Source of the DNA: Dendrobates tinctorius
Lineage: Eukaryota
NCBI RefSeq assembly: GCF_039654945.1
Contig: NW_027361830.1
Coordinates: 1-64,000, forward strand
Reading direction: 5' to 3'
DNA: 64,000 nucleotides
Part shown: positions 261 through 63,231 of the stretch, one piece after another
Layout: each line of letters begins with the position of its first letter
Position numbering within the stretch: the stretch's first letter is position 1
Notes under the pieces: model-generated
Seen by the model: only the letters and a program-made list of their open reading frames with translations
Database searches by the model: none
What the model was told of the DNA's origin: nothing
Position numbers and translations under genes: made by a program

Positions 261-872
261 TCAGTATTGAGTAGAAGCACCCTTTTGAGCTAGTACAGCC
301 ATGAGTCTTCTTGGGAGGGGTGATGCAACAAGTTTTTCACACCTGGATTTGGGGATCCTCTGCCATTCTGCCTTGCAGATCCTCTCCAGTTCCATCAGGT
401 TGGATGATGAACGTTGGTGGACAGCCATTTTCAGGTCTTTCCAGAGATGCTCAATTGGGCTTAGGTCAGGGCTTTTGCTGGGCCAGTCAAGAATGGTCAC
501 AGAGTTGTTCTGAAGCCACTCCTTTGTTATTTTATCTGTGTGCTTAGGGTCATTGTCTTGTTGGAAGGTGAACCTTCGGCCATGTCTGAGGTCCAGAGCG
601 CTCTGGAAGAGGTTTTCATCCAGGATATCTCTGTACTTGGCCGCATTCATGTTTCCTTCAATGGCAATCAGTCGTCCCGTCCCTGCAGCTGAAGAACACC
701 CCCATAGCATGATGCTGACACCACCATGTTTCACTTTTGGGATTGTATTGGGCAGGTGATGAGCAGTGCCTGGTTTTCTCCACACAAACCACTTAAAATT
801 ATCACCAAAAAGTTCTATCTTTGTCTCATCAGACCAGAGAATCTTATTTCTCATAGTCTGGGAGTCCTTCAT
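261..872 (-). pseudogene. Tc1 transposase DDE-domain remnant
   Basis: ORF track translation has the Tc1 DD34E motifs; the N-terminal half is frameshifted and split by the MITE at 1053-1400. Confidence 0.85.
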
Positions 873-10952: not shown

Positions 10953-11414
10953 AAAAAACAAAAAAACTAAACTGGAGTAGAATTGAATGACATGCATGAT
11001 GTAAAAGCATGTTCACACTGGCCATAAAAGCAAGCAAAAACCAAAGGAAAAAACAATGTGTGTATATACCCTAATGAAAATAAATAAGTCAAAAGCAAGT
11101 GCATTAAATAACATAGGGTACTTGGTAAACACTATTTTGATCAAAAAAGTATAAAGCTGTCCCACCACGGCAAGGTGTACCCATTTGAGACAGTAACTAC
11201 ACTAACGGTTAAAACCACTATTCACACTAGGTAGGTTTTACCGTTAGTGTAGTTACTGTCTCAAATGGGTACACCTTGCCGTGGTGGGACAGCTTTATAC
11301 TTTTTGATCAAAATAGTGTTTACCAAGTACCCTATGCTATTTAATGCACTTGCTTTTTTACTTATTTATTTTCATTAGGGTATATACACACATTGTTTTT
11401 TCCTTTGGTTTTTG
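10953..11414. mobile_element. Non-coding inverted (foldback) insertion with 15-bp TSD, Penelope-type signature
   Basis: Arms 11033-11216 / 11234-11416; flanked by CTAACGTTGAACTTG at 10938-10952 and 11415-11429. Confidence 0.7.
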
Positions 11415-11452
11415 CTAACGTTGAACTTGGTCTTACGGTAGTGATACTTTAA

Positions 11453-20793: not shown

Positions 20794-22812
20794 AACAGGA
20801 AAACTTGTTTGGCTGGGTGAGAGGCTTCTAACAGAGGATTTGGTGGTTAGATTTTAGGGTACGGTAGATCACAAACTATTTTATAAGAAAAAACAGAACT
20901 ACAAATTCCCAGATATAATTTTTTTTTCCTGCATTCTCCTAAAAAAAATCTTTTCATCAATTCTCTTGAATATTATTCTATACTGAGACTTGTCCTTTTA
21001 AATATATCCATAAGAGTTCTAGTTGGTGGAACTGTGGTCTCCATTACTACATTATAGGACTGCCATCGTGTGCTTGATTTGGCCCAAGCTCTACTAGTTT
21101 AGATGGTGCCAAATCTTGCACGGGTTTCCGCTGGTCACTCAGTTTAACCGGTTCCCAATTAGAGATGGAGCTTTGTCTACTGTGTCACAGTGTAGGGCAC
21201 TTGAACGGCTGACATTTATCTGTATTGAATTTGAATGGTTTTATTTTTTCATGTTAAGATATTTTGTAAGGGGAAATTGTATTTGTTTTTACTTTTTTAA
21301 TGTTTTCTCCTCCTGTAATTTACCATGGCTGCCCTATCATTGACCTGTCTTTAGGATAGGTCCTCATTATTCGGATCTGACACTTAGGAATAATGGTTGT
21401 GCAGTGCTGGGGTCCTGTATGAAGTCTGTATGGTCTCACGGTATGTGTGCGTTTCCTGCCACACTCCAAAAACCTGCTGATTGGTTGACTTCCGCTAAAA
21501 GGGAACGTCCCCTTTTAGTACATATTTGTACCTGGGTGCAGTTTGGTATTAAAACAAACAGACCCAAGTTATCCTCACCTTCCTCGGGTCCAGCACGGAG
21601 TGTCCACCACTGCTCCCAGTGTCTGGTATGGACTCGCTTGCCAATAGCATGGCCGCCTATCGGTGAGCTTAGCAGTTTTTGAGTGGGGTGATCTGTTGTG
21701 GGGTGGGTTTTTTTTGTTTTTTTATACCAGACTGTGCCCGGTGATTTAAGATTTCCTGAAATGGGACAGTGCCTTTGCATTGAGCTCATGGCGCTGAATA
21801 CTAATTTGATTGGCTCATTACCAGTCATTTTAGAACTCTCCTAACGTCAGTGGCACAATGCCTATGCTGGGACGTGATCAGATGGCACCTTGCTCTGCTA
21901 TCCGGAAAAGCCATTTTATTTCCTCATACAGATACATAAAGCCCGTTTATCTGAGCGCTATGTGCAACTCGACAAACCAGAAAATGTTGTATACCCAGGA
22001 TGTGGTGCATCTGTAGCTGGCGGGCCGGATGACATTGTCACTTCCACCGGTTGCCGAGCCAAAGTGGATAAATGTATTCTCTGTTGGGCACATTGGCTCA
22101 GCATTAATGAGCATTCCGCTCTAATAGAAGCCATCTACCAATAAGTGAATGAACCCGTGTATGTACTAATGCTGACGCTTTCCTCGCACTTAGCTGCTAT
22201 AACCCTGCGCTCTCGGGCTCGAATTTTCTGACACTTTTTGTACATATGGATTGTGGCCGATGTAATAACTGGTTAATGATACATTTCCCATATTCTGCCC
22301 ATTGTTGCATCACTATACGATCCTGTCTGGTTCTGATACTCCCTCAATGAGTCCTCTTGTCTGGTAAATATTCCCACCGCGGGGACATCTTAGTCCCTGA
22401 AGTTAATTAACTGCAGCACTTAAGAATAAGGAAATCTTGTATTATTATTATTTTTTACTAACCCCTCTTTATAGAAATAATGTGGAAAAATATTATAGAA
22501 ATAAATTACAGCATACCCCATCCTTTCACACAAAACCTGTAGAAAAGCATGATCTTCCTGCCTGCTTGGACCACTCGTTGAAACGGCTTCAAATGCCCAT
22601 ACTAGAAAAAATATGAAAAAATGCAATGTGTGAATGGAGCCTAAGCTTCTTACTTTAGAGGGCACTTTAGGTTGGCAACACATAGTTTTTCCTTTAGTAA
22701 GGACCACGCTGCAGGTTTGTCGAACAAAGTCAGTATTAAGCTCGCTTCTCACCAGTACAAGTGCAGGACCCGCGGCTAGATTCATTTCAACTGGCGCTTA
22801 TGAAGCCACTAA

Positions 22813-23638
22813 AGCAAAATAAAGGATGGAATCTCCAGCGCTGGACTTCAGTTAAAAATACATCATTTATTGTAAATTCTTAAAATCGAACAGAAAAAGT
22901 GTGGATAAGGACATACAGGCAGATGGGGTCTCTGGTGGTCTCCAACCTCTGCCAATTTCTCTGAAAAAGACCCTATCCCCGAAATTATAGTTCTAAAGGG
23001 GGGGGGGAACAAATCCTTGTGGATTTTAGGAAACGCATGATAAATGGGAATCACAGGGTTCTTGATATTAACATAATCATAAATTTTCTGTGTTATGGCC
23101 CCTGTGACTAAACCATCGTTTAATAATTTTGACAAATCACACTGAAATTTAGACGTGGGATCACTAGAAATCTTGGAATAGGTAGATCCCACGTCTAAAT
23201 TTCAGTGTGATTTGTCAAAATTATTAAACGATGGTTTAGTCACAGGGGCCATAACACAGAAAATTTATGATTATGTTAATATCAAGAACCCTGTGATTCC
23301 CATTTATCATGCGTTTCCTAAAATCCACAAGGATTTGTTCCCCCCCCCCTTTAGAACTATAATTTCGGGGATAGGGTCTTTTTCAGAGAAATTGGCAGAG
23401 GTTGGAGACCACCAGAGACCCCATCTGCCTGTATGTCCTTATCCACACTTTTTCTGTTCGATTTTAAGAATTTACAATAAATGATGTATTTTTAACTGAA
23501 GTCCAGCGCTGGAGATTCCATCCTTTATTTTGCTTCAGTCAACACCCCTGATCAAGGTGACTCCGTGCGCAGGAGGATTATGGATCGCAACCGAGACTGG
23601 TGAGCTGACCTCCCTTCATTTTCCCTATCCTTCTATAA
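22813..23638. mobile_element. Penelope-like retroelement, inverted insertion with RT fragment
   Basis: 351-bp arms 22812-23162 / 23185-23535; both encode the PKIHK..PFRTIISGIGS Penelope RT N-terminal motif; 15-bp TSD TTATGAAGCCACTAA at 22798-22812 and 23639-23653. Confidence 0.85.
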
Positions 23639-23671
23639 TTATGAAGCCACTAAGTTGTTTCTCTATCATTG

Positions 23672-26994: not shown

Positions 26995-28658
26995 AACCTA
27001 AAAACAACTCAACTGCTTGTTTGTGAATTATGAATGGTGCTTAATGCTAACCAGATGCATAAAGTGTGTATTCTCATATTGATTGACTTCTACCTCTTAG
27101 GCTATGCACACAAATCAACCTCAAAGACAGAACTCCTTAAAAACATAACTTCCACTATAAAAAATGTATTAAAATATCTTCACATTTCCTTAATGGGCTT
27201 GCAATGAAACAAAAATACTGCTTCTAAAGTCGCACAACAAGAGACCTAGTTGGGCGGAGAGAGTCTGGTGAGGACCTCTCTTTTGGACTAGATATCGTAC
27301 CTCCTACTCAGCCGCGCTTTCAATGATTTTCTGTTCCCCCATCCTCCGCAGCAATTCAGGGTAAATTATATAGATTTTTAGAATCTGGGAACGGACAAGA
27401 TTTTCTTTAAGCAAAAAGAAATTTATAGTGTAGCTTTCCCCACATCGCTGCAGTCCTCTTTCCTGGCCTATATTTGTAGATGGTCAGAAACTCCTTCATT
27501 CCATCCAAAAATCCACCTAGCGCGCAGACATCCCTTAACTTTGTCAGGTTGTGTGCCACTTTCAAATCTAGTCCTGTATATTTCTTGAAAGACATCCTGG
27601 TGATTGCAGTTATGTCTTTCTTAAGTTCTCTTTTTATTGAGCTTGTAAGCACTGATTTGGAGATGGCTGAAGAGTTCACTGTTATCGCCTAATGCCAACC
27701 AGCTTCAGGGCAGTGCTTACAAGCTAAATAGTAGCCGTGGTCAGATTCCTAGGCAAGGAAATTATCTCCAGAATGGCTGTAAATTTTAATAAGGCTATGT
27801 TAACAGCCTTGCGTTTTTTTTAATGCAGATTTTCAGCTGTGTTTCACAGTACCAGCGAAAGCTATGAGACTTCAGAAATCTCATGCACACACCTTGTATT
27901 GGAAAACTGCTTTTTTGCAAACTGCAGCATGTCCCTTTCAGCATTTTTGCAGCATTTTTTTCACCCATAAAAAGCAATGAGTAAGTGCAAAGAATGCAGG
28001 TTTCAGGTTTTGCTGCATTTTTGGTACAAAAACTCTAAGGAAGTTGCATCACTTTTTTCCCTTCACCCATGACAGCACCACATGAGAGAGGGATCCGCCC
28101 CGCCAGGACAGGAACCTACTGAAATATAAGGGGCGGCACCTCTCCCCCGCTTCAGTTGGGTTCCTGTCCTGGAGCGGGATCCCAGGCTGACAGCGGCGGT
28201 GCCTGCCATGGATGAAGACATGGACCCAGGGCCGTCCCGGCGCGGGAAGAGCAGGTCAGCTTACCTGCAGCGCTGGCCGTCGGCGCCTGGAAGCGCAGTC
28301 CCCGGGGTTCCTCCAGCAGGCCCCGGGTTCGTGCGGGTGCAGTAAGGCGGCCTCCATTCGGGGCGCTCCTCCGTGCCTCCCTCCCCCTGCGCGCGCGCCC
28401 GCTCGCTCCTTCTCCCTGGGACAGGGGAAGCCGGGCGCGACTTCCGGCGCCTGACGTCAGCGGCGCGGTGCAGCTTGGGTATGCGCCGGCTGACGTCACG
28501 GACGCGACTGACATGGCGCCTAGTGCGGCGCCGGCCACAAAAGAAGGAAAAAAAAAAAAAAAGAAGAATGGCCGGCGGTCGCAGGGGGGAGGGTCAAAAG
28601 GATCGCTCACCGGGGCCTATTTAAAGGAGGCAAGGAGCAGAACGGCCGGGCTGTTACA

Positions 28659-28857
28659 ATGGGGTCACAGCAGGAACGCTCACCGTCCCTACTGTCTCTA
28701 CCCCCGTCGCAGACCTCGGCACGGAAGCACGGTAGCCGTTCGAGCGGTAAGAGCAGCAGCCGTCCGAGCCATAGATCAAATGATTCCTCGAGATCGAGAG
28801 AACACAGACCACATGCTCCAGCGCAGCCTTCCAGCCCGGTACCCGATTTTGTGGGTG
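28659..28857 (+). CDS. Putative first (Ser-rich) exon of DIRS gag
   Basis: TATTTAAA at 28618-28625, ACAATGG start at 28659, donor-like GTGGGT (28851) or GTGAGT (28858), acceptor ttccttag at 28927. Confidence 0.4.
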
Positions 28858-28927
28858 GTGAGTGGATCTTCGTGAATGTTAGACCATTATTAATAGGGTC
28901 CTTTTTGTGTGTTATTTGCTTCCTTAG

Positions 28928-30156
28928 GTGAATGGCAAAAAAGCAGGGAGCAAAAGAAATAGGGAGTGTGCGATATGCCAGAACCCCCTAGCGAAGGATT
29001 GGCAAAAAAACCTTTGCGCTAGCTGTATACAGCAAACAGTGGCGGAGGAAGTGCCGAGCCTAGCAACTCACCTCAGATCTGTCATAAAATCAGAGGTGGA
29101 AGGTTCACTTAAATTATTATTAAAGAAAAAGAAAAAAGTAGAAGAAACTCCTCAAGTTCTTCAGACTCCTCCTCGTCCGAATATCAGGCTGAGCGCATGT
29201 CCTCTTCCTCCTCGGATAGTGACACAGGGGGCAGACCGTGTTTTCCGGTTGAGGATACTGATAGTCTCCTTAAAGCCATTAGGTCAACTATGGGCCTTCA
29301 GGAGGAAAAAGCGACCAAATCCCTAGAAGATGTAATGTTTGGTGGGTTACAGGAAAGGAAGAAACGCACCTTTCCAGTTAATGAAAAAGTCCAGGCGCTC
29401 ATCGAAAGGGAGTGGAAGAAGCCTGAAAAATCAGGTAGCCTTCCTTCCTCCTCAAAAAGGAGATATCCCTTTGACCCTAAGGATACGGAAATATGGGACA
29501 AGGTCCCAAAAATCGATGCGGCAGTATCCAGGTCATCCAAAAGGTCGGCCCTGCCCCTAGAGGACTCAGGAGTACTAAGAGATCCACTAGATAAGAAAGC
29601 AGACTCCTACCTAAGGCATGCTTGGGAAGCAACAGCGGGGGGACTAAAACCTGCGATAGCCGGTACCTGTACAGCCCGGTCTTTAATGATCTGGCTACAG
29701 CAGCTAGAAGAAAAAATTGCTTCCAAGATGTCTAGGGAGAAAATTTTAGGAGACATGTATCTGCTACACGGAGCAGCCGCCTTTTTAGCCGACACCTCTG
29801 CCGATTCCATGAGGTTGACGGCGAGAGCAGCGGGACTATCAAATGCTGCAAGGCGTGCATTATGGCTTAAAGGGTGTCTGGGAGATCTACAATCAAAAGC
29901 CAAATTATGCTCCCTTCCATGTGATGGACAATTTCTCTTTGGAAAAAATCTGGACGAAATCCTAGAAAAAGCGGGTGATAAGAAGAAGGGCTTCCCCAGG
30001 TTTCAGGGAGATCAAAGAAGACCGCCCTTTCGGAGGGGGAAATTCAATAGAGGCCGGCCTCCGGGAGATCGGAAAAGATGGGAAGACAAGAGGAAGAAAG
30101 AGTCTGGATTCATGTTCGGGGGAGCCGCTTCATCCGCAAAAAAGTCCCCTCAATGA
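28928..30156 (+). CDS. DIRS gag-like protein (CxxC-CxxC finger plus LAP2alpha-like domain), one frameshift near 29135
   Basis: CAICQNPLAKDWQKNLCASC in ORF 28928; YPF..WDKVPKIDAAV..DPLDKK..RRALWL..LFG in ORF 29197; the frames join across the A-run at 29122-29137. Confidence 0.8.
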
Positions 30157-32053
30157 CGCCGGCATCCCCGTAGGGTGGAGACTGATGCTGTTTGGTCAGG
30201 CCTGGGAAAATATATCTTCCAATACTTGGATTTTAAACATCATAAAGGAAGGTTTAAAATTCCCCTTTTTTCAACAGCCAAGAGCATCATTTGTGGTGAC
30301 CCCCGTCAGGAGAGGGGTAGAAGAACAGTTGGCCTTAGAGGCAGAGATCCTAAGCCTGCTGGACAAACATGTCCTGATCGAGGTCCCAAGAGGACAGGAA
30401 AGAAGGGGTTTCTACTCGCCCCTCTTTCTAATAAAAAAACCGGATCATTCGTTCAGGACTATTATAAACCTGAGAGGCCTCAACCGTTGGATACAGAACC
30501 AAACCTTCAAAATGGAGTCAGTGACTTCAGCTATAAGGCTGTTACACCACAACTGCTTCATGGCGGTAGTCGATCTAAAGGATGCTTACTACCACATCCC
30601 GATCCATTCAGAATACCAAAAATACTTAAGGGTAGCGCTCTACATTCGGGGCAACCTCAAACATTTTCAGTTCAGAGCCCTTCCATTCGGCATATCCATA
30701 GCACCGAGGGTGTTTACAAAAGTAGTTGCAGAGATGACAGCATTCCTCCGCATCCACAACACAATTATAATACCCTACCTAGACGATTTTCTAATTGTGG
30801 GCAACTCAGAACGTCACTGCACAGAGCAAGTAGAAAGGGTGATAGATACCCTACGGAATCTCGGCTGGATGGTGAATGTCAAGAAGTCAAGGCTACAACC
30901 CTTACAAAGGCAAATGTTCTTAGGTTTCATCTTGTACTCAAATCAACAAATTTGTCTCTTACCAGACGCCAAGGTGGAAAAGGTAAGGGATATGATCTTG
31001 GCAACAATAGATCAACCTCACACGACCCTGAGAGGGGCAATGTCCTTGTTGGGCACTCTGACAGCCTGTATCCCAGCGGTCAGATGGGCACAATTTCATA
31101 CCCGTCAACTACAAGCAGAGGTCCTATCAGCACAGAAGTCGCTAAAAGGCTGTTTAGAAGGAAGGCTGGAACTTTCCGTAAAAACCAAAGGCTCTCTCAG
31201 ATGGTGGCTAGACAGAGCAAACCTACTAACAGGGACATCGTGGCAGAAGCCAGTGTCCGACGTGATAATGACAGACGCAAGCTCCTCGGGGTGGGGAGCG
31301 CACCTAAGGGGACAGGTAGCCCAGGGACCCTGGGGACACCTAGAGCAAAACGCATCCTCCAACCTAAGAGAGCTATGGGCAGTAAACAGAGCCCTAAGGA
31401 TATTCATGCCCACTCTAGAAGGCCGCAATGTCCGGATTATGTCGGACAACAGCACAACAGTAGCCTACATCAACCACCAGGGAGGGACAAGGTCACGCTC
31501 CCTAATGCTCGAAACCAACGAGATCTTTCACAGGGCAGAGAGACACCTACACTCCCTATCAGCCCTACACATCAGAGGGGTAGAAAACACACAAGCTGAT
31601 TTCCTAAGCCGCAACACACTAAAACAGGGGGAATGGACCCTGAATCGGGTAGTGTTCCAAAAGATAGTACATCTTTGGGGAGAGCCAATAATAGACCTCT
31701 TTGCCAACAGAAGCAACAGGCAGGTAAAAAGATTCTGTTCACTGAACCCAAAGGAAGAGCCATGGGCAGTGGACGCTTTGCAAATTCCGTGGGATTTCAA
31801 GCTAAGTTATGCCTTTCCTCCGGTAGCTCTAATCCCAGTAGTAGTGAAAAAGATAAGGGAAGATCAGGCCAGAGTGATCTTAATAGCCCCGTTCTGGCCA
31901 AAAAGGCCATGGTTCTCACTACTACAGATAATGTCCCTCTTAGATCCATGGGTACTGCCAGAGATTCCAGACCTGCTAGCTCAGGGTCCGGTATTCCACA
32001 CGCAAGTCAAGGGGTTCCATCTGACGGCGTGGAATTTGAAAGGTCACTTTTAA
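29975..32053 (+). CDS. DIRS reverse transcriptase / RNase H / adenine-methyltransferase-like ORF
   Basis: 692 uninterrupted codons; DLKDAY, LPFG, YLDD (RT); TDAS, E, SDN, ADFLSR (RNase H); IDLFA, YAFPP (MT-like). True start uncertain. Confidence 0.95.
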   Translation: MIRRRASPGFREIKEDRPFGGGNSIEAGLREIGKDGKTRGRKSLDSCSGEPLHPQKSPLNDAGIPVGWRLMLFGQAWENISSNTWILNIIKEGLKFPFFQQPRASFVVTPVRRGVEEQLALEAEILSLLDKHVLIEVPRGQERRGFYSPLFLIKKPDHSFRTIINLRGLNRWIQNQTFKMESVTSAIRLLHHNCFMAVVDLKDAYYHIPIHSEYQKYLRVALYIRGNLKHFQFRALPFGISIAPRVFTKVVAEMTAFLRIHNTIIIPYLDDFLIVGNSERHCTEQVERVIDTLRNLGWMVNVKKSRLQPLQRQMFLGFILYSNQQICLLPDAKVEKVRDMILATIDQPHTTLRGAMSLLGTLTACIPAVRWAQFHTRQLQAEVLSAQKSLKGCLEGRLELSVKTKGSLRWWLDRANLLTGTSWQKPVSDVIMTDASSSGWGAHLRGQVAQGPWGHLEQNASSNLRELWAVNRALRIFMPTLEGRNVRIMSDNSTTVAYINHQGGTRSRSLMLETNEIFHRAERHLHSLSALHIRGVENTQADFLSRNTLKQGEWTLNRVVFQKIVHLWGEPIIDLFANRSNRQVKRFCSLNPKEEPWAVDALQIPWDFKLSYAFPPVALIPVVVKKIREDQARVILIAPFWPKRPWFSLLQIMSLLDPWVLPEIPDLLAQGPVFHTQVKGFHLTAWNLKGHF

Positions 32054-33018
32054 GTAATAGAGGATTCTCCCCTGGGTTGGTGGCTACACTGATGAAAAGT
32101 AGGAAGCCAGTAACAACTAATATATATGGTAGAATATGGAATAAGTTTCTGGGGAAACCATTAGACCAAGAACCCCCGATCAAGACTATCTTAGAGTTCT
32201 TACAGGCAGGTCTACAGCTAGGCCTAGCGGTAAATACACTCAAAGTACAAGTTTCAGCGCTAGGCGCTCTATATAATTGTAACATAGCGGCAAACAGATG
32301 GATAGCTAGGTTTATTAAATCCTGCCACAGGTCTAGACCAGTCCCATCGCAAAAAATGGCTCCCTGGGATTTAAACCTTGTGTTAGAAGCTCTCACAAAG
32401 GAACCATTTGAACCAGTACAACAACTATCAGTGAAATATCTTACCCTAAAAACCATTATTCTAGTGGCCCTTACATCGGCACGTAGGGTAAGTGACCTGC
32501 AGGCCCTATCAGTTAGTCCACCGTATACCCAGGTATACCAGGACAGAATTGTCCTAAAAACAGACCCTGCTTATTTACCGAAAGTGGTGTCGGATTTTCA
32601 CCGTAGCCAGGAAATCGTCCTCCCCTCCTTCTGTGAAAATCCGAAAAACCCAGGAGAGGAGAAATTCCATAATCTAGATGTGAAAAGAGCCCTCTTAGAG
32701 TATATATCAGTAACCAGCCAGTGGAGGAGGTCCCAGTCCCTATTTGTAGCCTTCCAGGGTGCCAGGAAAGGTTATGGATTATCGAAAGGGACTATTGCCA
32801 GATGGATTAGGGAGGCCATTAGTGTAGCCTACTCAGCTAGTGGTGTTCCGATTCCTGATGGCATCAAGGCTCATTCCACCAGAGCCGTGGCGACCTCCTG
32901 GGCTGAAAAGGCAGAGGTATCAATTGAGCAAATTTGTAAGGCCGCTACCTGGGCCTCACCCTCAACCTTTTTTAAGCACTATAGATTAAATCTATCCTCC
33001 TCGGCTGACTTGACCTGA
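31633..33018 (+). CDS. DIRS tyrosine recombinase
   Basis: TSARRVSDL (R), AHSTR (HxxR), ATWASPSTFFKHY (W, Y). Overlaps the RT ORF; the TGA at 33016 is followed by 11 more in-frame codons. Confidence 0.93.
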   Translation: MDPESGSVPKDSTSLGRANNRPLCQQKQQAGKKILFTEPKGRAMGSGRFANSVGFQAKLCLSSGSSNPSSSEKDKGRSGQSDLNSPVLAKKAMVLTTTDNVPLRSMGTARDSRPASSGSGIPHASQGVPSDGVEFERSLLSNRGFSPGLVATLMKSRKPVTTNIYGRIWNKFLGKPLDQEPPIKTILEFLQAGLQLGLAVNTLKVQVSALGALYNCNIAANRWIARFIKSCHRSRPVPSQKMAPWDLNLVLEALTKEPFEPVQQLSVKYLTLKTIILVALTSARRVSDLQALSVSPPYTQVYQDRIVLKTDPAYLPKVVSDFHRSQEIVLPSFCENPKNPGEEKFHNLDVKRALLEYISVTSQWRRSQSLFVAFQGARKGYGLSKGTIARWIREAISVAYSASGVPIPDGIKAHSTRAVATSWAEKAEVSIEQICKAATWASPSTFFKHYRLNLSSSADLT

Positions 33019-33077
33019 CGTAGAAGGGTGCTGCAAGCGGTGGTCCCTCCCTAAAGGTGTTTCGAAGTCTCCAAAAA

Positions 33078-33164
33078 TCTCTCATGTGGTGCTGTCATGG
33101 GTGAAGGGAAAACCACCATGGTTACTTACCGGTAGCCGGTTTTTCCGGAACCCATGACAGCACC
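33078..33164. repeat. DIRS internal complementary region (ICR)
   Basis: First part is complementary to the left terminus, second part to the right terminus; they join at GAAGGG-AAAA-CCACC. Confidence 0.92.
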
Positions 33165-34127
33165 CGTATATTCCCCCCCCTTTTTTCACCGTATGGGTGT
33201 GCACAATAGTCGGGTGTATTTGTGTGATGTGGTGTTGGATAAACATGTAACTAACCGGGAAGTCCTCTCAATGCTCTGTAATCCAACTGAAGCGGGGGAG
33301 AGGTGCCGCCCCTTATATTTCAGTAGGTTCCTGTCCTGGCGGGGCGGATCCCTCTCTCATGTGGTGCTGTCATGGGTTCCGGAAAAACCGGCTACCGGTA
33401 AGTAACCATGGTGGTTTTATCATTATGCACAAGAGACAATAAAAACACAAAATACCTGCTTTTTGTAAACAGGATTTGCCTGCAGAAAAAAACGCAACGT
33501 GTAAATATTGCCTGAGAGTACTTTCCCACGTTCAGGATTTGCTGCGGTTTTGACGCTGTGTATTTATGCAGTGTCAAAAACGCAGTGGCTAAGATGTTGT
33601 GCACCTGGGGAAAAAGACATGCAGCGTGACTTTCAGATCAATCTTAACATTCATCTACCTAGCAACTATATATCATTTACTATACATATATCTCTTCGTT
33701 CAGTATGTGTTTATCTCAGATCAACAGCATGTCCAGGGGCAGACACTGACAGCTTGAGACCCCTGTGCAAGAAATGTCTGGGCCCCCTTCCTTTTATACA
33801 GTGCCCTCTCTTGCTATGTACAGCACCGTTCCCTACATATTGTATTATATAGAGCCCTGTATTTTATTACATACTGTGATGAATGAACTCATGGAGATCA
33901 ACATCCAACACTTCGGAGACACCATCACGTTTCTCAACGCAGTGATTCTAGAGCAATGCCCCCATCCCCTATGGGAAATATGCAAAATCATGCAAAACAA
34001 GCTGCGGAGACACCATCACGTTTCTCAACGCAAGCAATGACTAGCCAGGTCTTTCCCCAGGAAGGAACAACCACGGGAAGGGCAGTCTCCAATGAAGAAA
34101 ACCACATATGCCAAAACATGGTATCCA

Positions 34128-34171
34128 TCCACAGACAGCTGTTTCGGGGTATTGCCCCTCATCAGTGTGGA
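34128..34171 (-). ncRNA. Minimal type I hammerhead ribozyme
   Basis: Minus strand TCCACA CTGATGA GGGG-CAATA-CCCC GAAA CAGCTGTC TGTGGA; complete core, GUC cleavage triplet. Confidence 0.85.
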
Positions 34172-34293
34172 GTAGGAAACTGGCTAGTAGGATGGTGTCT
34201 CCGCAGTGTTGGATGTTGATCTCCATGAGTTCATTCATCCTCATTTTTCACAGTCTTTTACTAGGCATTGCTCCTACTAGCCAGTTTCCTACT

Positions 34294-34335
34294 CCACACT
34301 GATGAGGGGCAATACCCCGAAACAGCTGTCTGTGG
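34294..34335 (+). ncRNA. Minimal type I hammerhead ribozyme
   Basis: CCACA (stem I), CTGATGA (34299-34305), GGGG-CAATA-CCCC (stem II), GAAA, palindromic ACAGCTGT stem III, GTC cleavage after 34330, TGTGG (stem I'). Confidence 0.85.
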
Positions 34336-36942
34336 CTGGATACCATGTTTTGGCATAGGTGGTTTCCTTCATTGGAGACTGCCCTTCCCGTGGTTGTTCC
34401 TTCCTGGGGAAAGACCTGGCTAGTTATTGCTTGCGTTGAGAAACGTGATGGTGTCTCCGCGGCTTGTGTTTTGCATGTTTTATTACATACCGTCCTGTCT
34501 TGTTAGCTGTATAATGCAATGGCTAGGAAAGTTTCCTTTCTAATGGAGATGATGGACTGGTCGTCTGGTCACCGGGTCCTCCATCAGCAGTCATTTTATA
34601 TCTAAAAAGAGAGGGGACTTTGTAATAAAAGAGGGCACTGTTAATAACAAAATTAAAAAGAATACACTATGTAAGAGACAGCACTATACATAAGAGCAGA
34701 GGAAGCTATATAATAAGGGACGACACCATATATAACTAGAGAGGATGGTAGGTAATAAGGGACAGTGTTATACATAATAAAAGAGGAAACTGTAACTAAG
34801 GATGGTGTTATACAGAATTAGTGAGTACACTATATACTAAGGGACTATGTTATACATAAAAAGTACGTATACTATATGCTAAGGGACTGTTAGACATAAT
34901 AAGTGAGTACACTATATACTAAGGGACTGTTAGATATAAGTGATAATAATGTCTTCCTCCACCTCCCCCTCCCCCTGTTCCTAAGTCAATTATAAGTCCA
35001 CCTTCCTCCCATCCCAATCCCCTACACCCCTCATTGTCGTCCTCTCCCCGCATCCCATTATTGCCCTCTTTCCCACCTATATCATTGCCTTCTCCCCTGC
35101 CACCCCATCATTGCCCTTTCCACCACCTCCATCATTGCCTTCTCCATCATTGCCTTCTCCACCACCCCCATTATTGCCTCCTTCCCCATCACTCCCATAT
35201 CGTCTTTTCCACTACCACTATCATTGCCTCCTCCCCATCACCCCCCATCATGGCCTTCTCCACCTACACACATCGATCCACACACAACACATACATACAC
35301 ATCCACTCCACACACATACTACATCATTGCCTTCTCCCATCACACTACATACATACACACACATAGTCACACTCACACACACAGCAGCAGTGACAGGCAG
35401 GACAGTACTTCACATGATGTCCGCTCCGCAGTATCACTGCCTCCACCCTCCACAGCTGCTTCCTGTGTCTCTGGAACAGCAGCTGTGCCGCTGAATGATG
35501 AAGTCATTCAGCGGTGCGCTCCTCTATGTGTCAGAGAGACACAGGAAGCGCTGGCGCCGGGCAGGAAGGATCCTTGCAGCTCCACTCCTGCTGTTTTCTC
35601 TTGCAGGCAGCGGAGCTGTTGGGATCTCTCCCTGCCCGCCGCTACACGAGGGCAATCTGGCCAGGGGCCCCCCGGAGCCTCCGGCCCGGAGAAACCGGCC
35701 AGATTGCCCTCATCATTAGCCGCCCTCCAGGGACCCCCTGGAGCCTCTGGGCCCCGATGCAATGCACCGGTTGAACCGGCAGTATGTCCGCCCATGAGCA
35801 TGTCAATTTCTTTTGTGGCTACACATGTGGATTTCCCCCATAGACTGGCACTAATGTCCGCTAGTTTGCATAATAGGTTCGGATATTTCAAAACCGCAGC
35901 AGATCCTGAACGTAGGAGCGTACCCTAAACCAGTAAATTGTGCAACCAAGTATTACTTAAAGCGAACCTGTCAGTAGTTTTGGCCGATCTAAGATGCGGC
36001 CACCGCCTTTCAGGGCTTATCTACAGCATTCTGTAATGCTGTAGATAAGCCCCCGGTCTAACCTGAAAGATAAGAAAAATAAGCTTCATTATACTCACGG
36101 GGGGGTGTCAGTTCGGTCCGATGAGAGGCGCCGGATCCGGACCTGCGACACCTATCTTGTGATGCCGCCCTCCTGCTTGCTTCATGGCTCCCCGGCATTG
36201 CGCTCCTGCACAGGCTTACTTATCTGCCCTGTTGAGGACAGAGCAAAGTACTACAGTGCGCAGGGGTTTGGCCTCTGACTTTTCCCTGCGCACTGCATTA
36301 CTTTTACTCTGCCCTCCACAGGGCAAAGAGATACGCCTGCGGAGGAGCACGATGCCGGGGAACCTGTGAAGCAAGCAGGAGGGCGGCATCGGAAGGTGAT
36401 GGGAAGTGCCGGACCTGTGACATCTATCGGACCCCCCCCCGGTGAGTATAATGAAACTTATTTTTATCTTTCAGGTCAGACTGGGAGCTTATCTACAGCA
36501 TTACAAGAAACAATTGAAGCAAGACCAATGTCCTACCTCTAGCTGCAATCTAGCCTGCACTAGAACCTTCAGTAACAAGGACGTACCTAATATTATTGGC
36601 TGCTTAAGTGGCTCCTTGCAAGAATTCCTGAGATATTACAAATATATATAACAAAAGCTAGTCAGTATCCTAGAAGAGATTATCCTATGCGAGGTTGCCA
36701 CCAGGAATTTCAGGGTCCTATACTGGCAAATTTTTCGGGTTCCCTTGAGACTTCCCTCGAACCTTCCACAGGCCCACTGCCCACTTCTGCACCACGTCGT
36801 CACCAATAACACATTAACACTTCCCATAGAACACCAGGTCACATACATAGCTATCAGCTTTTGTTTTATCCAAAAGATTTAAGCCACCGCCACTACAAGG
36901 CAGACTCTCTTGGCTGGGCCATACTCTTCTGTAACCTATTAA

Positions 36943-43270: not shown

Positions 43271-43373
43271 CTGTATTAAACTTTCATACCAAGTTTAAGA
43301 ATGTGTATAACATTAGAAACTCAACATGTTCCCCTTTTGTCCTGCCATTGACTGATATGATACCAAATATGTA

Positions 43374-45119
43374 CAGTGCCTTGCGAAAGTATTCGGCCCC
43401 CTGGAACTTTTCAACCTTTTCCCACATATCATGCTTCAAACAAAGTTACCAAATGTAAATTTTTGGTGAAGAATCAACAAGTGGGACACAATTGTGAAGT
43501 TGAATGAAATTTATTGGTTATTTTAAATTTTTTGGGAAATTCAAAAACTGAGAAGTGGGGCATGCAATATTATTTGGCCTCTTTACTTTCAGTGCAGCAA
43601 ACTCACTCCAGAAGTTCATTGTGGATCTCTGTATGATCCAATGTTGTCCTAAATAACTAATGATAAATATAATCCACCTGTGTGTAATCAAGTCTACGTA
43701 TAAATGCACATGCTCTGTGATAGTCTCAGGGTTCTGTTTGAAGCACAGAGAGCATCATGAAGATGAAGGGACACAACAGGCAGGTCCGTGATACTGTTGT
43801 GGAGAAGTTTAAAGCTGGATTTGGATACAAAAGGATTTCCCAAACTTTAAACATCCCAAGGAGCACTGTGCAAGCGATCATATTGAAATGGAAGGAGTAT
43901 CATACCACTGCAAATCTACCAAGACATGGCCGTCCCCCTAAACTTTCATCTCAAACAAGGAGAAGACTGATCAGAGATGCAGCCAAGAGGCCCATGATCA
44001 CTCTGGATGAACTGCAGAGATCTACAGCTGAGGTGGGACAGTCTGTCCATAGGACAACAATCAGTCGTACACTGCACAAATCTGGCCTTTATGGAAGAGT
44101 GGCAAGACGAAAGCTATTTCTCAAAGATGTCCATAAAAAAGTGTTGTTTAAAGTTTGCAACAAGCCACCTGGGAGACACACCAAACATGTGGAAGAAGGT
44201 GCTCTGGTCAGATGAAACTAAAATCGAACTTTTTGGCAACAATGCCAAACGATATGTTTGGAGTAAAGGCAATACAGCTCATCACCCTGAACACACCATC
44301 CCCACTGTCAAACATGGTGGTGGCAGCATCATGGTTTGGGCCTGCTTTTCTTCAGCAGGGACAGGGAAGATGGTTAAAATTGATGGGAAGATTGATGGAG
44401 CCAAATACAGGACCATTCTTGAAGAAAACCTGTTGGAGTCTGCAAAAGACCTGAGACTGGGACGGAGATTTGTCTTCCAACAAGACAATGGACCTGTTGA
44501 AGTGCATTGGCAAGGAAACGGCTGTTGTCCGTCTTTTTACATCTCTCCCGTGCCGATGCCTATGCTTTGTCAATATGAAATAAAGTGAATCATTTCAAGA
44601 GAACGGTGAGTGCCATCCTCCTGTCTTTTTCTTCTACAATGGAAGGGTTCACAAATAAATGTATCCAGGTGTTAGAATGGCCAAGTCAAAGTCCAGACCT
44701 GAATCCAATCGAGAATGTGTGGAAAGAGCTGAAAACTGCTGTTTACAAACGATATCCATCAAACTTCACAGAGCTCGAGCTGTTTGCCAAGGAAGAATGG
44801 GCAAGAATTTCAGTCTCTCGATGTACAAAACTGATAGAGACCTACCCTAAGAGACTTGCAGCTGTAATCGCAGCAAAAGGTGGCGCAACAAAGTAGTTAA
44901 AGGGGACGAATAATATTGCACGCCCCACTTTTCAGTTTTTGTATTTCCACAAAAATGTAAAACAACCAATAAATTTCGATCAACTTCACAATTGTGTCCC
45001 ACTCGTTGTTGATTCTTCACCAAAAATTTACACTTGGTACAGTATCTTTATGTTTGAAGCATGATATGTGGGAAAAGGTTGAAAAGTTCCAGGGGGCCGA
45101 ATACTTTCGCAAGGCACTG
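43374..45119 (+). mobile_element. Tc1-like transposon with long TIRs, disrupted transposase
   Basis: TA|CAGTGCCTTGCGAAAGTATTCGGCCCCCTGG...CCAGGGGGCCGAATACTTTCGCAAGGCACTG|TA; ~200-bp inverted ends. Confidence 0.95.
43757..44896 (+). pseudogene. Tc1 transposase, frameshift near 44135 and foreign insertion at 44491-44632
   Basis: ORFs 43757, 44007 and 44585 together give paired HTH, WSDETK, FQQDN and SPDLNPIEN. Confidence 0.9.
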
Positions 45120-45257
45120 TATCTGGATACTTACATGTTTTTAATAGTTTTTTTAATAAAGAAACTATAATTTTTATTGGAACTTGGTGCCCTGTGAGAT
45201 GGATCTTCCTCCTCTTTTTCCCCCATGTCTTTTTATACAGTTATGGTATAAAGTATA

Positions 45258-58022: not shown

Positions 58023-58960
58023 GGCTGGGTTCACACGTGGCGTTTTTTTCGCGTTTCCGCGGCTGTTTTAACCGCGTGATTTTGCCGCGAAAAATAAGCA
58101 TCCCATGCATTCCTATGGGATTCCGCAATGCTGTGCTAATGCTGCGGTTTTTACCGCGGCGGAATCGCTTCGCGGTAAAAACCGCAGCATGCTCATTAAT
58201 TTGCGGAATCGCGGCGATCCCGCACCCATAGGAATGCATTGTTCCACTTATTTCCCGCATGTGGCTGTGCACAACATGCGGAAAGTAAGCAGAACATTTG
58301 CGGATGGTACCCATGGTCCGGAGGAGAGGAGACTGTCCTCCGGGCTTTGGGTACCATATCCCTGTAAAAAAAAGAATTTAAAAATAAAAAATATTGTTAT
58401 TCTCACCCTCCGGCGTCCCGCGCAGCCTTCCCGCTTCTCTTCACGCTCCCGTTCCCAGTAGTCCTTTGCGAAAATGCCCGCGATGGCGTCCGATCTCGCG
58501 GGATCGTGAAGTCTCGCGGTCATTCGCGCGACGTCATCGCGAATAACCGCGAGACGTCGCGATCCCGCGAGAACTGACGTCATCGCAGGCATTTTCGCAA
58601 AGGATTACTGGGAACGGATGCGCGGGACGTCGGAAGGTAAGAATAACACCGTTTTTTATTTTTTTTTTTACATTTTATCTTTTACTATTGATGCTGCATA
58701 GGCGGCCTCAGTAGTAAAAAGTTGGTCACACTCGTCAAACACTATGTTTGACGAGTGTGACCAACCTGTCAATCAGTTCTCCAAGCGATGCTACAGATCG
58801 CTTGGAGAACGCTAGCATTTTGCAAGCTAATTACGCTTGCAAAATGCTAGTTTTTCCGCGGGAAAATCACGGGAATTTAAAATGCGATTTTCCCGCGGAC
58901 TGGAATTCCGGAATTCTCGCGGTAATTTCCGCGAGAGTTCCGGTACGTGTGCACTTAGAC
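58023..58960. mobile_element. TWA-target MITE with internal hairpins
   Basis: TTA|GGCTGGGTTCACACG...CGTGTGCACTTAGAC|TAA; hairpin TTGGTCACACTCGTCAAACA-CTA-TGTTTGACGAGTGTGACCAA. Confidence 0.75.
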
Positions 58961-61600: not shown

Positions 61601-63231
61601 TCACTTGTCGTCATCTTCATCATCATCTTCTTCTTTGTTCCTATTCATAATCTGGAAAAGAAAAACAAGCTTTCCTGCTTTATTGGGTCCCAACCGATTT
61701 CTCAATTTAGAATGAATGAGTCCAAAGGAAGAGAATATTCTTTCAACGCCTGCAGAAGAAGCTACTGCTGTTAAAAGTGAAATCATTACTTGAACAGTCT
61801 CTAAATCCAAGCGCTTAAGTGACTTCCACCAGTTTACTGGTGTGACCTTCCTTAAAATATCTTCAGCAAACATATATTTCTTGAATGGTTCCCCCTTAGC
61901 TCTGAAGTTTATTATAGTTGGCATTAAAGATGGATGATTGCTGGATACCCATGTCATAGCTAACTCCTCTTCCTCAGCACTTAGGTTTTGACCCTGATAT
62001 TGGATATTGACAATATTTGCCAAAAAATGAGCTGGAGTCAGTGCTTGTCCCATTCGTTTGTTTACTGCTTGTAATTTAATTCTGTCCATGTTTAGTTCTG
62101 TTTTTAAGTGTTCACTCAGTTCCTTCCAAATTTCAACAGCATCCGCAATAAAACAGCTATTTTTCTGTATTTTGTTTAAAGCTTGAGAGATGGGTTCCAG
62201 GAAGCTCAGCATATGTTCAACATTTCTCTTAAGCCCAATGTTGAGGATTTTGGCCGTGACAGTGCCATCTATTTTATCTCGATTTTCTTCACAAAGTGTC
62301 ATCAGAATAGGCCAGTTTTTGATATACTGCTCAAAACAGTCCACCACAGAGTTCCATCTAACATCTTGTGGGAGCGTTAGCTTGGTTCCACCCATCCTTT
62401 TCAGAGCTGCTGCAGCAAAATGATTATTACGGAAGTATTTAGCATTTTCAACAACATTAGCCTTTATTTCTGGAACACTTAAGTCTTTGGCTAAGAGGTG
62501 CAGCAAATGAGCACTGCAACCATATGTTATTAGCAGCTTTGTATTCCCTCCCTGCTCTTCTAAATCTCTTCTCATCTTGGATACGTTTGCAGCATTGTCA
62601 GTGACCAAACTGCGTACTAGACATTTGAATTTTTGTTCACATGTCGTTATAGCTTTTACTGCCACTTCTTGTAAGTATTCTGCTGTGTGTGCATTTCCTG
62701 ACGTATCAGTTGTTTGTGCAAGGAAGACTTTACCTTCTTTTGTTGTTATACAAGCACATACAATAGGATCATTGTGGACATTACTCCAACCATCAATACT
62801 TAGGTTAACAATTTTACCCTCCAGAGCTGTTGCACATTGCTCCATTTCTCTGTCATACACTTGATCCAGCAGTTTCCCTGCAACATCAGCTCTGCTGGGT
62901 GGACTGTATCCTGGTCTCAGTGACTGAACCATATTAATGAAATGTGGGTTCTCAGTCAGACGGAAAGAAGAGTTCGTTGCATAAATAAACTGGGCAATTT
63001 TTTCATCAATCAACTCTTTTTCTAATCTGCTAGTTCTTATCACAAACCTATCTATGGTGGTTCCAGGAGGTAAAGGTTTTTTCTTCCTTTTGGGTGATGG
63101 TGATATGTGGCTGTGGGTGTCTGATGATGATGCTGCTAATGAAGCACTATCCTGGATGGATAACTCTGAAACTGTAGAACAGGATGATGGTGATCTTGGA
63201 GGTGGATAGTTTCCAGAATCCATGAATTCCC
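61601..63231 (-). CDS. hAT transposase exon 2 (DDE and dimerisation domains)
   Basis: SIDGWS (D), VTDNAAN (D), CSAH (CxxH), VRWNS, SSAGVERIFS (E); acceptor tttag| at 63231; no stops. Confidence 0.92.

Follow-up and report, generated by a model that had tools for sequence, protein, structure and literature searches.

How did two identical hammerhead ribozyme motifs come to lie on opposite strands of one short insert in a frog genome? The stretch in which they occur, 64,000 nt of Dendrobates tinctorius DNA (contig NW_027361830.1, positions 1 to 64,000; hereafter the window), holds a high-copy host repeat that is interrupted just downstream of position 33,877. We find that the interrupting insert is a reverse-transcribed copy made up of two head-to-head pieces of a ~350-nt retrozyme repeat, and that it is not new in kind but a clean instance of one that is known from amphibians. 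The whole is best explained by a single retrotransposition of two complementary DNAs (cDNAs), made from a non-coding hammerhead retrozyme RNA, into the host repeat, an account to which we assign a probability of roughly 0.8.

Architecture and target site of the insert

A repeat scan of the window returned two inverted pairs at the locus, one of 199 nt (33994-34192 and 34272-34470, 97% complementary) and one of 49 nt (33878-33926 and 34191-34239, 98% complementary). Numbered in the ribozyme sense, the repeat unit consists of segments B (1-199; 34272-34470), X (200-266; the reverse complement of 33927-33993), A (267-315; 34191-34239) and L (316-347; 34240-34271). The two arms of the insert jointly hold all four junctions of a closed unit (B-X, X-A, A-L and L-B), and the unit therefore closes at 347 nt. 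The preliminary description of this DNA had read the arms as circular permutations of a ~347-nt monomer (315 + 32), a reading that the repeat scan and the unit map confirm. The 5' ends of the arms meet at 34191/34192 and both 3' ends face outward, next to the target-site duplications (TSDs). A BLAST search of the window with the rebuilt 347-nt unit found no copy outside the insert. The features of the insert are collected in Table 1.

Table 1. Features of the insert and its target site, in coordinates of the window
Feature	Position	Strand	Remarks
Left TSD	33862..33877	.	13/13 perfect at 33862-33874, then 3 more with one CpG-to-TpG difference
Arm 1 (unit 1-315)	33878..34192	-	3' end at left TSD, 5' end central
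Segment X (unit 200-266)	33927..33993	-	~58 nt of X (unit 209-266) missing from + arm
Type I hammerhead motif, 42 nt	34129..34170	-	Predicted cut between 34134 and 34133, after C 34134
Head-to-head 5'-end junction	34191..34192	.	2 nt common to both arms (microhomology)
Arm 2 (unit 267-347, then 1-208)	34191..34477	+	3' end at right TSD
Linker L, 32 nt (unit 316-347)	34240..34271	+	In + arm only; closes unit; crossed by 381-nt contig of run X2
Type I hammerhead motif, 42 nt	34294..34335	+	Predicted cut after C 34330
Right TSD	34478..34493	.	33862-33874 = 34478-34490, 13/13

That the locus is a true insertion is supported by public sequencing runs, for which we used 24 sets of Logan contigs that come from eight studies of three coded organisms (whether a run is RNA is a guess); four of these runs were compared with the locus, taking contigs of at least 85% likeness. 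One contig of run X1 and one of run X6 join 33861 directly to 34478, with the 13 duplicated letters fitting either side, and three further contigs skip a nearly identical interval. Other copies of the host repeat are free of the insert and have the 13 bases once. Empty paralogous sites combined with a TSD are the standard proof of insertion, and the 13-bp TSD originally proposed around the element is borne out both by these contigs and by the perfect match of its two copies. The duplication extends to 16 nt with a single mismatch, T at 33875 against C at 34491; because this C, the only mismatch, sits in a CpG, the original TSD was probably 16 bp long before CpG decay. The flanks are very high-copy, with a summed contig depth of 68,735 at 34482-34508 in run X20. 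The host repeat occupies 33780-33877 and 34478-34930 of the window and includes minisatellite tracts of ~20 or 42 nt (34598-34930), which have inverted counterparts to the left of the insert; the TSD sits inside one of its minisatellite units.

Each arm holds a segment that the other lacks (~58 nt of X in one and the 32 nt of L in the other), and therefore neither arm was copied from its partner. A second arm made by snap-back, self-primed synthesis was considered and is ruled out by the same ~58 nt, which are present in the - arm and absent from the + arm. Furthermore, both arms span the predicted ribozyme cut at unit 59/60, and the template was therefore not a ribozyme-cleaved linear monomer. 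Each arm was thus copied separately, from a template that was either longer than the unit or circular.

Comparison of the arms also bears on the age of the insert. Over 248 aligned positions they differ at seven substitutions and one 2-nt indel, and at least four of these changes occur in a single arm and in none of the matched contigs (34106, 34003 and 33913 in the - arm; 34425 in the + arm), that at 34003 lying at a CpG. Such private changes are as predicted for decay after a single insertion, and at ~1.4% change per arm the insert cannot be called young. Most contigs of the family carry an extra AT after 33928, 34019 and 34444, and the studied element is without it at all three sites, which accounts for its 347 nt as against ~351 nt for the family. 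The AT-less sites 34019 and 34444 represent one unit position in the two arms, and a minority state is also common to the arms at 34059/34405. Since the arms have minority states in common, they come from one template or from one subfamily.

The hammerhead, its unit and the fate of this copy

The two 42-nt motifs are letter-for-letter identical, and in both the predicted cut falls at unit 59/60. They are the sole matches in the window to a relaxed core pattern, for which a shuffle control gave an expectation of 0.03 matches, with two matches in none of 100 shuffles. The core (CUGAUGA, GAAA and GUC) is intact, and its parts follow in the order helix I 5' strand, CUGAUGA, helix II, GAAA, helix III, GUC cut site and helix I 3' strand. 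Helix I has 5-6 pairs and is open-ended, as in type I; helix II has four G-C pairs and the loop CAAUA; helix III consists of just A-U and C-G, with the loop AGCU. The sole variant listed inside the ribozyme among the family contigs falls in loop 2 (34313).

So short a helix III invites the question of whether the ribozyme would act as a dimer. For a single copy, the active fold is calculated at -15.1 kcal/mol (constrained) against -20.3 kcal/mol for the minimum-energy fold. The co-fold of two copies has -41.1 kcal/mol, as against 2 x -17.8 (-35.6) kcal/mol for the separate monomers, and an 8-bp intermolecular helix III forms from the palindrome. As modelled, this co-fold would match the dimer-dependent behaviour published for newt and axolotl hammerheads (PMC7229834, where Forster et al. 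1988 is cited); those of the axolotl 330- and 350-nt units cut well only as dimers and form circles (PMC7229834). Thus, the identical motifs with intact cores on the two strands and the palindromic stem III, both of which had been noted from the letters of this DNA at the outset, hold up under the pattern search and the co-fold. Rfam returned nothing for the whole window at gathering score; at permissive E-values it gave only hairpin-driven microRNA look-alikes and Hammerhead_3 (16 bits, E = 2.5 per copy), a weak score of the kind to be expected with so short a helix III. As Rfam makes no call at its thresholds, the identification rests on the core and the pairing and not on a curated model.

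The unit itself has a GC content of 47%, contains a 31-nt direct repeat whose copies are 91 nt apart, and is non-coding, the longest stop-free stretch round a trimer being 109 aa. Its closure is seen again in run X2, where record 9 (381 nt) covers unit 44-264, then 267-347, and runs on to 72, the joint between X and A falling at 33929/34191. At ~30 nt, the overlap between the ends of this record is what a closed cycle would give in a k = 31 graph. Closure at ~351 nt is thus seen in another, related organism, although tandem DNA and multimeric or circular RNA look alike in contigs. The family is abundant, with 396 matched contigs in X6, 567 in X20 and hundreds overall in the three organisms; an exact scan of metagenome contigs for a 32-nt ribozyme sequence gave no match. 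As a weak hint of expression, the depth of the retrozyme relative to the host repeat in organism A is greater by a factor of at least 10 in X1 (labelled 'RNA?', itself a guess) than in X20. The TSD with its empty sites, the independent closure of the unit, its abundance and its lack of coding capacity together uphold the earlier view of the insert as an integrated copy of a tandem or circular RNA family.

In several runs and organisms, contigs match the ribozyme-proximal part of the unit and then diverge, before 34259 and before 34120, into other conserved sequence, and one 440-nt contig has only 34290-34324 in common with the unit. These loose ends suggest that other repeat families, or the pseudo-long terminal repeats (pLTRs) of Penelope-like elements (PLEs), carry a nearly identical hammerhead.

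The copy in the window is a dead end from which no unit-length RNA can be released, because its ribozymes lie on opposite strands and inside a 199-bp hairpin. Each strand has one sense and one antisense ribozyme, so that a transcript of either would hold a single cut site and no second sense ribozyme with which to pair. For the insert, the calculated folding energy is -451 kcal/mol (z = -42.8), and the duplex in a transcript would extend over ~200 bp. As a speculation, such a copy might serve as a source of double-stranded RNA.

Priming, template and candidate helper

We propose that an endonuclease made nicks staggered by 13-16 bp and that retrozyme RNA was then reverse-transcribed from each 3'-OH so exposed. 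Priming from the bottom strand would have begun at unit 208, on a 4-nt T/A microhomology, to give the + arm, and that from the top strand at unit 315, at no evident homology, to give the - arm; the two cDNA ends would then have been joined head-to-head on the 2-nt microhomology at the centre. The bottom-strand primer at the right junction has four A at its end, facing a run of U in the family-majority RNA. Given the 248-nt overlap of the arms and their circular permutation, the template was multimeric or circular, or there were two template molecules. On this account we take the template to have been an uncleaved multimer or a ligated circle. A single linear RNA of ~1.6 units would suffice if it were primed at its 3' end and again 240 nt upstream, with 49 nt of displacement, and a circle or two separate molecules would explain both arms equally well. 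At the level of the family, as published for amphibian retrozymes, tandem copies would be transcribed, two hammerheads, once paired by way of the palindromic helix III, would cleave 3' of GUC, and a host ligase would circularise the monomers.

The enzyme was most likely the protein of a PLE, with reverse transcriptase (RT) and GIY-YIG domains. A 2020 review states that animal retrozyme sequences give no clue to the helper element (PMC7761336). PLE insertions often carry an inverted 5'-truncated copy and have variable, fairly long TSDs (PMC8557442), and the insert has the layout described there, with an inverted 5'-truncated copy, arms set head-to-head and outward 3' ends. Together with a long TSD, arms so arranged are the scar that PLEs usually leave, in keeping with the mobilisation by Penelope RT suggested in the preliminary description.

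A PLE-derived hairpin lies in the same window at 22800-23653, and PLEs have therefore been active in this genome. For an open reading frame (ORF) fragment within it (22863-23192, - strand), the best full-length hit in a representative search is an 859-aa RT protein (73%, E = 2.4e-32), which in turn matches RVT_1. Its arms (22808-23162 and 23185-23539) are 355 nt long, ~100% complementary and separated by a 22-nt loop; its TSD is 13 bp (22800-12 and 23641-53), and the hairpin is very young. Its left junction has a 5-of-6 microhomology to an internal site. The right arm of this hairpin extends 106 nt further 3' than the left, and the ends of the retrozyme arms are 107 unit positions apart; with two cases, the similarity of these offsets may be due to chance. 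A large coding element immediately left of the insert, at 28055-33418, was considered as a source PLE and rejected, since it is DIRS-like and has its own terminal repeats, ending at 33418. This retrotransposon comprises a LAP2alpha-like gag ORF (29197-30156), RT with RNase H (29975-32053) and a weak tyrosine-recombinase match (31633-33018), together with inverted terminal repeats (28055-28162 and 33280-33387, 95%) and internal complementary pieces (33078-33164 and 33363-33418).

Several observations weigh against this account of the insert. The PLE locus that encodes the 859-aa protein, in another assembly, contains neither a hammerhead core nor any stretch similar to the unit, and no PLE with a pLTR matching the unit was found, this being the one locus compared. 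The 30-40-bp 'tail' of PLE insertions is not evident, as the arms abut the TSDs directly; such a tail is frequent and not obligatory (PMC8557442). At the junctions, the 4-nt microhomology of the + arm depends on the T that most of the family has at the site of 33988 and that the element's own - arm does not carry, and no microhomology is seen at the left junction, that of the - arm. In addition, one of nine Xenopus retrozyme dimers cleaved in vitro (bioRxiv 10.64898/2026.07.22.740005), and with eight of nine uncleaved, an intact core would by analogy be no guarantee of activity.

An alternative is that the insert represents the remains of an autonomous PLE, that is, two 5'-truncated copies that reach into the pLTR only, the apparent unit being that pLTR. 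Type I hammerheads occur in PLE pLTRs, inversion and 5' truncation are frequent among PLE insertions (PMC8557442, PMC7761336), and the ribozyme is common to other contexts, as seen in the loose ends before 34259/34120 in several runs and in record 13 of X2, which matches 34290-34324 only. We nevertheless consider this origin unlikely, given that the unit closes after 347-351 nt and leaves no room for an ORF, both at the locus (the + arm reading A-L-B and the - arm B-X-A) and in the 381-nt contig. The unit has no coding capacity, the contigs already indicate unit-length closure without an adjoining RT gene, and helix III is present, whereas minimal hammerheads of PLEs are usually without it (PMC7761336).

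The clean 13-16-bp target duplication, which implies staggered nicks rather than end joining, and the outward orientation of both 3' ends, as expected for priming from both nicks, also make it quite improbable that a double-strand break was patched, without a retroelement endonuclease, with filler taken from tandem satellite DNA or from its circular DNA or cDNA. The PLE-derived insert in the same window, with the same layout and TSD length, argues in the same direction. What such filler would explain is the scarcity of junction microhomology (2 nt centrally and 0-4 nt terminally), the unremarkable unit positions at which the arms end, and the fact that retrozyme families also occur as satellite-like arrays (10.64898/2026.07.22.740005). 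A foldback or miniature inverted-repeat transposable element (MITE), i.e. a DNA transposon with long inverted repeats, might be suspected from the 199-nt inverted arms, the very stable hairpin and the flanking direct repeats. A 13-16-bp TSD exceeds those of the usual DNA transposon superfamilies. Moreover, the two outer ends do not form an inverted pair, the left being the end of segment A and the right lying in segment X, and it is for this reason that we reject such a transposon, to which we give hardly any credence; the arms are permuted, and none of the contigs displayed bridges the central junction.

Under the retrotransposition account, a further possibility is that the helper RT needs no defined 3' end, having begun cDNAs at the unrelated unit positions 208 and 315, on circular or multimeric RNA, with 0-4 nt of homology. 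We put this forward tentatively, as an idea that is somewhat more doubtful than not. If it is true, and if the 3' ends of the family are spread round the circle, it would provide direct genomic evidence for PLE-type priming, from both strands, on circles or multimers.

Elsewhere in the window, we observed a hAT-type transposase ORF at 61601-63223 (- strand; DUF659 and a hAT dimerisation domain), a Tc1-like DDE_3 fragment at 261-872 (- strand) and further hairpin or inverted-repeat structures at 11033-11416, 58444-58622 and 43372-45121, with arms of 62-118 nt. The latter may be MITEs or more two-armed retro-insertions.

Relation to known retrozymes and retroelements

Metazoan non-LTR retrozymes (those without long terminal repeats, LTRs) were defined by Cervera and de la Pena, who described dimer-dependent type I hammerheads in the axolotl and newts (PMC7229834). 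More recently, Li, Clavereau and Pollet found retrozymes in every one of the seven amphibians they sampled, among them Xenopus, whose retrozymes are related to PLE pLTRs; the consensus sequences average 316 bp in length (bioRxiv 10.64898/2026.07.22.740005). The suggestion in the preliminary description that the element is of a possibly uncharacterised kind therefore does not stand, as amphibian non-LTR retrozymes are already published in both studies. At the locus we find a type I hammerhead with an intact core and a NUH cut site; a short, non-coding, low-GC unit, within the ~150-450 bp of the class and without LTR, primer-binding site (PBS) or polypurine tract (PPT); continuity of the unit, although the locus itself is not tandem; and a TSD of >4 bp. 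By its sequence, then, the unit would qualify as a metazoan non-LTR retrozyme on every sequence-level criterion. It resembles the amphibian members of this group (axolotl Rtz_331 and Rtz_353, newt satellite 2 and Xenopus REP4), likened here by features and not by sequence, in being non-coding, ~350 nt long and below 50% GC; in the single type I hammerhead of each unit, whose helix III is very short and ends in a palindromic loop, a form that favours dimeric action; and in its self-closing unit (tandem or circular), its TSD of >4 bp and the abundance of its family. It differs in that this locus holds two sub-unit arms placed head-to-head, not in tandem, and unprocessable. A two-armed layout is not mentioned in PMC7229834 or in bioRxiv 10.64898/2026.07.22.740005, the word 'inverted' being missing from the former and confined to a single entry among the references of the latter; for PLEs, such a layout is standard.

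With PLEs, as portrayed in PMC8557442 and by Cervera and de la Pena 2014 (cited in PMC7761336), the insert has in common the head-to-head, inverted 5'-truncated layout, the outward 3' ends, the long TSD and the type I hammerhead. Unlike them, it is without an RT/GIY-YIG ORF, its unit closes after ~350 nt, helix III is present and there is no tail. In the twin priming of L1 elements, two cDNAs arise from nicked target strands and are joined on short microhomology, leaving an inverted 5' part with 5' truncation. The insert is similar in its proposed priming from two strands and its microhomology join, and differs in the 248-nt overlap and the circular permutation of its arms. The LTR retrozymes of plants are likewise hammerhead-bearing, non-autonomous retroelements that pass through a circular RNA (PMC4918200); what sets them apart is their type III hammerheads, LTRs, PBS and PPT motifs, 4-bp TSDs and Gypsy helpers, of which the insert shows none.

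Set beside these systems, the locus adds little on its own, given that amphibian retrozymes and their suspected dependence on PLEs are already published. Its value is that of a well-preserved single event, in which the insertion is proven, the template was longer than the unit or circular and uncleaved at the ribozyme, and the scar is of the two-sided priming type that PLEs typically leave. If scars of this sort were counted across the genome, the identity of the enzyme that mobilises animal retrozymes, and the question of whether it copies circles, could be decided.

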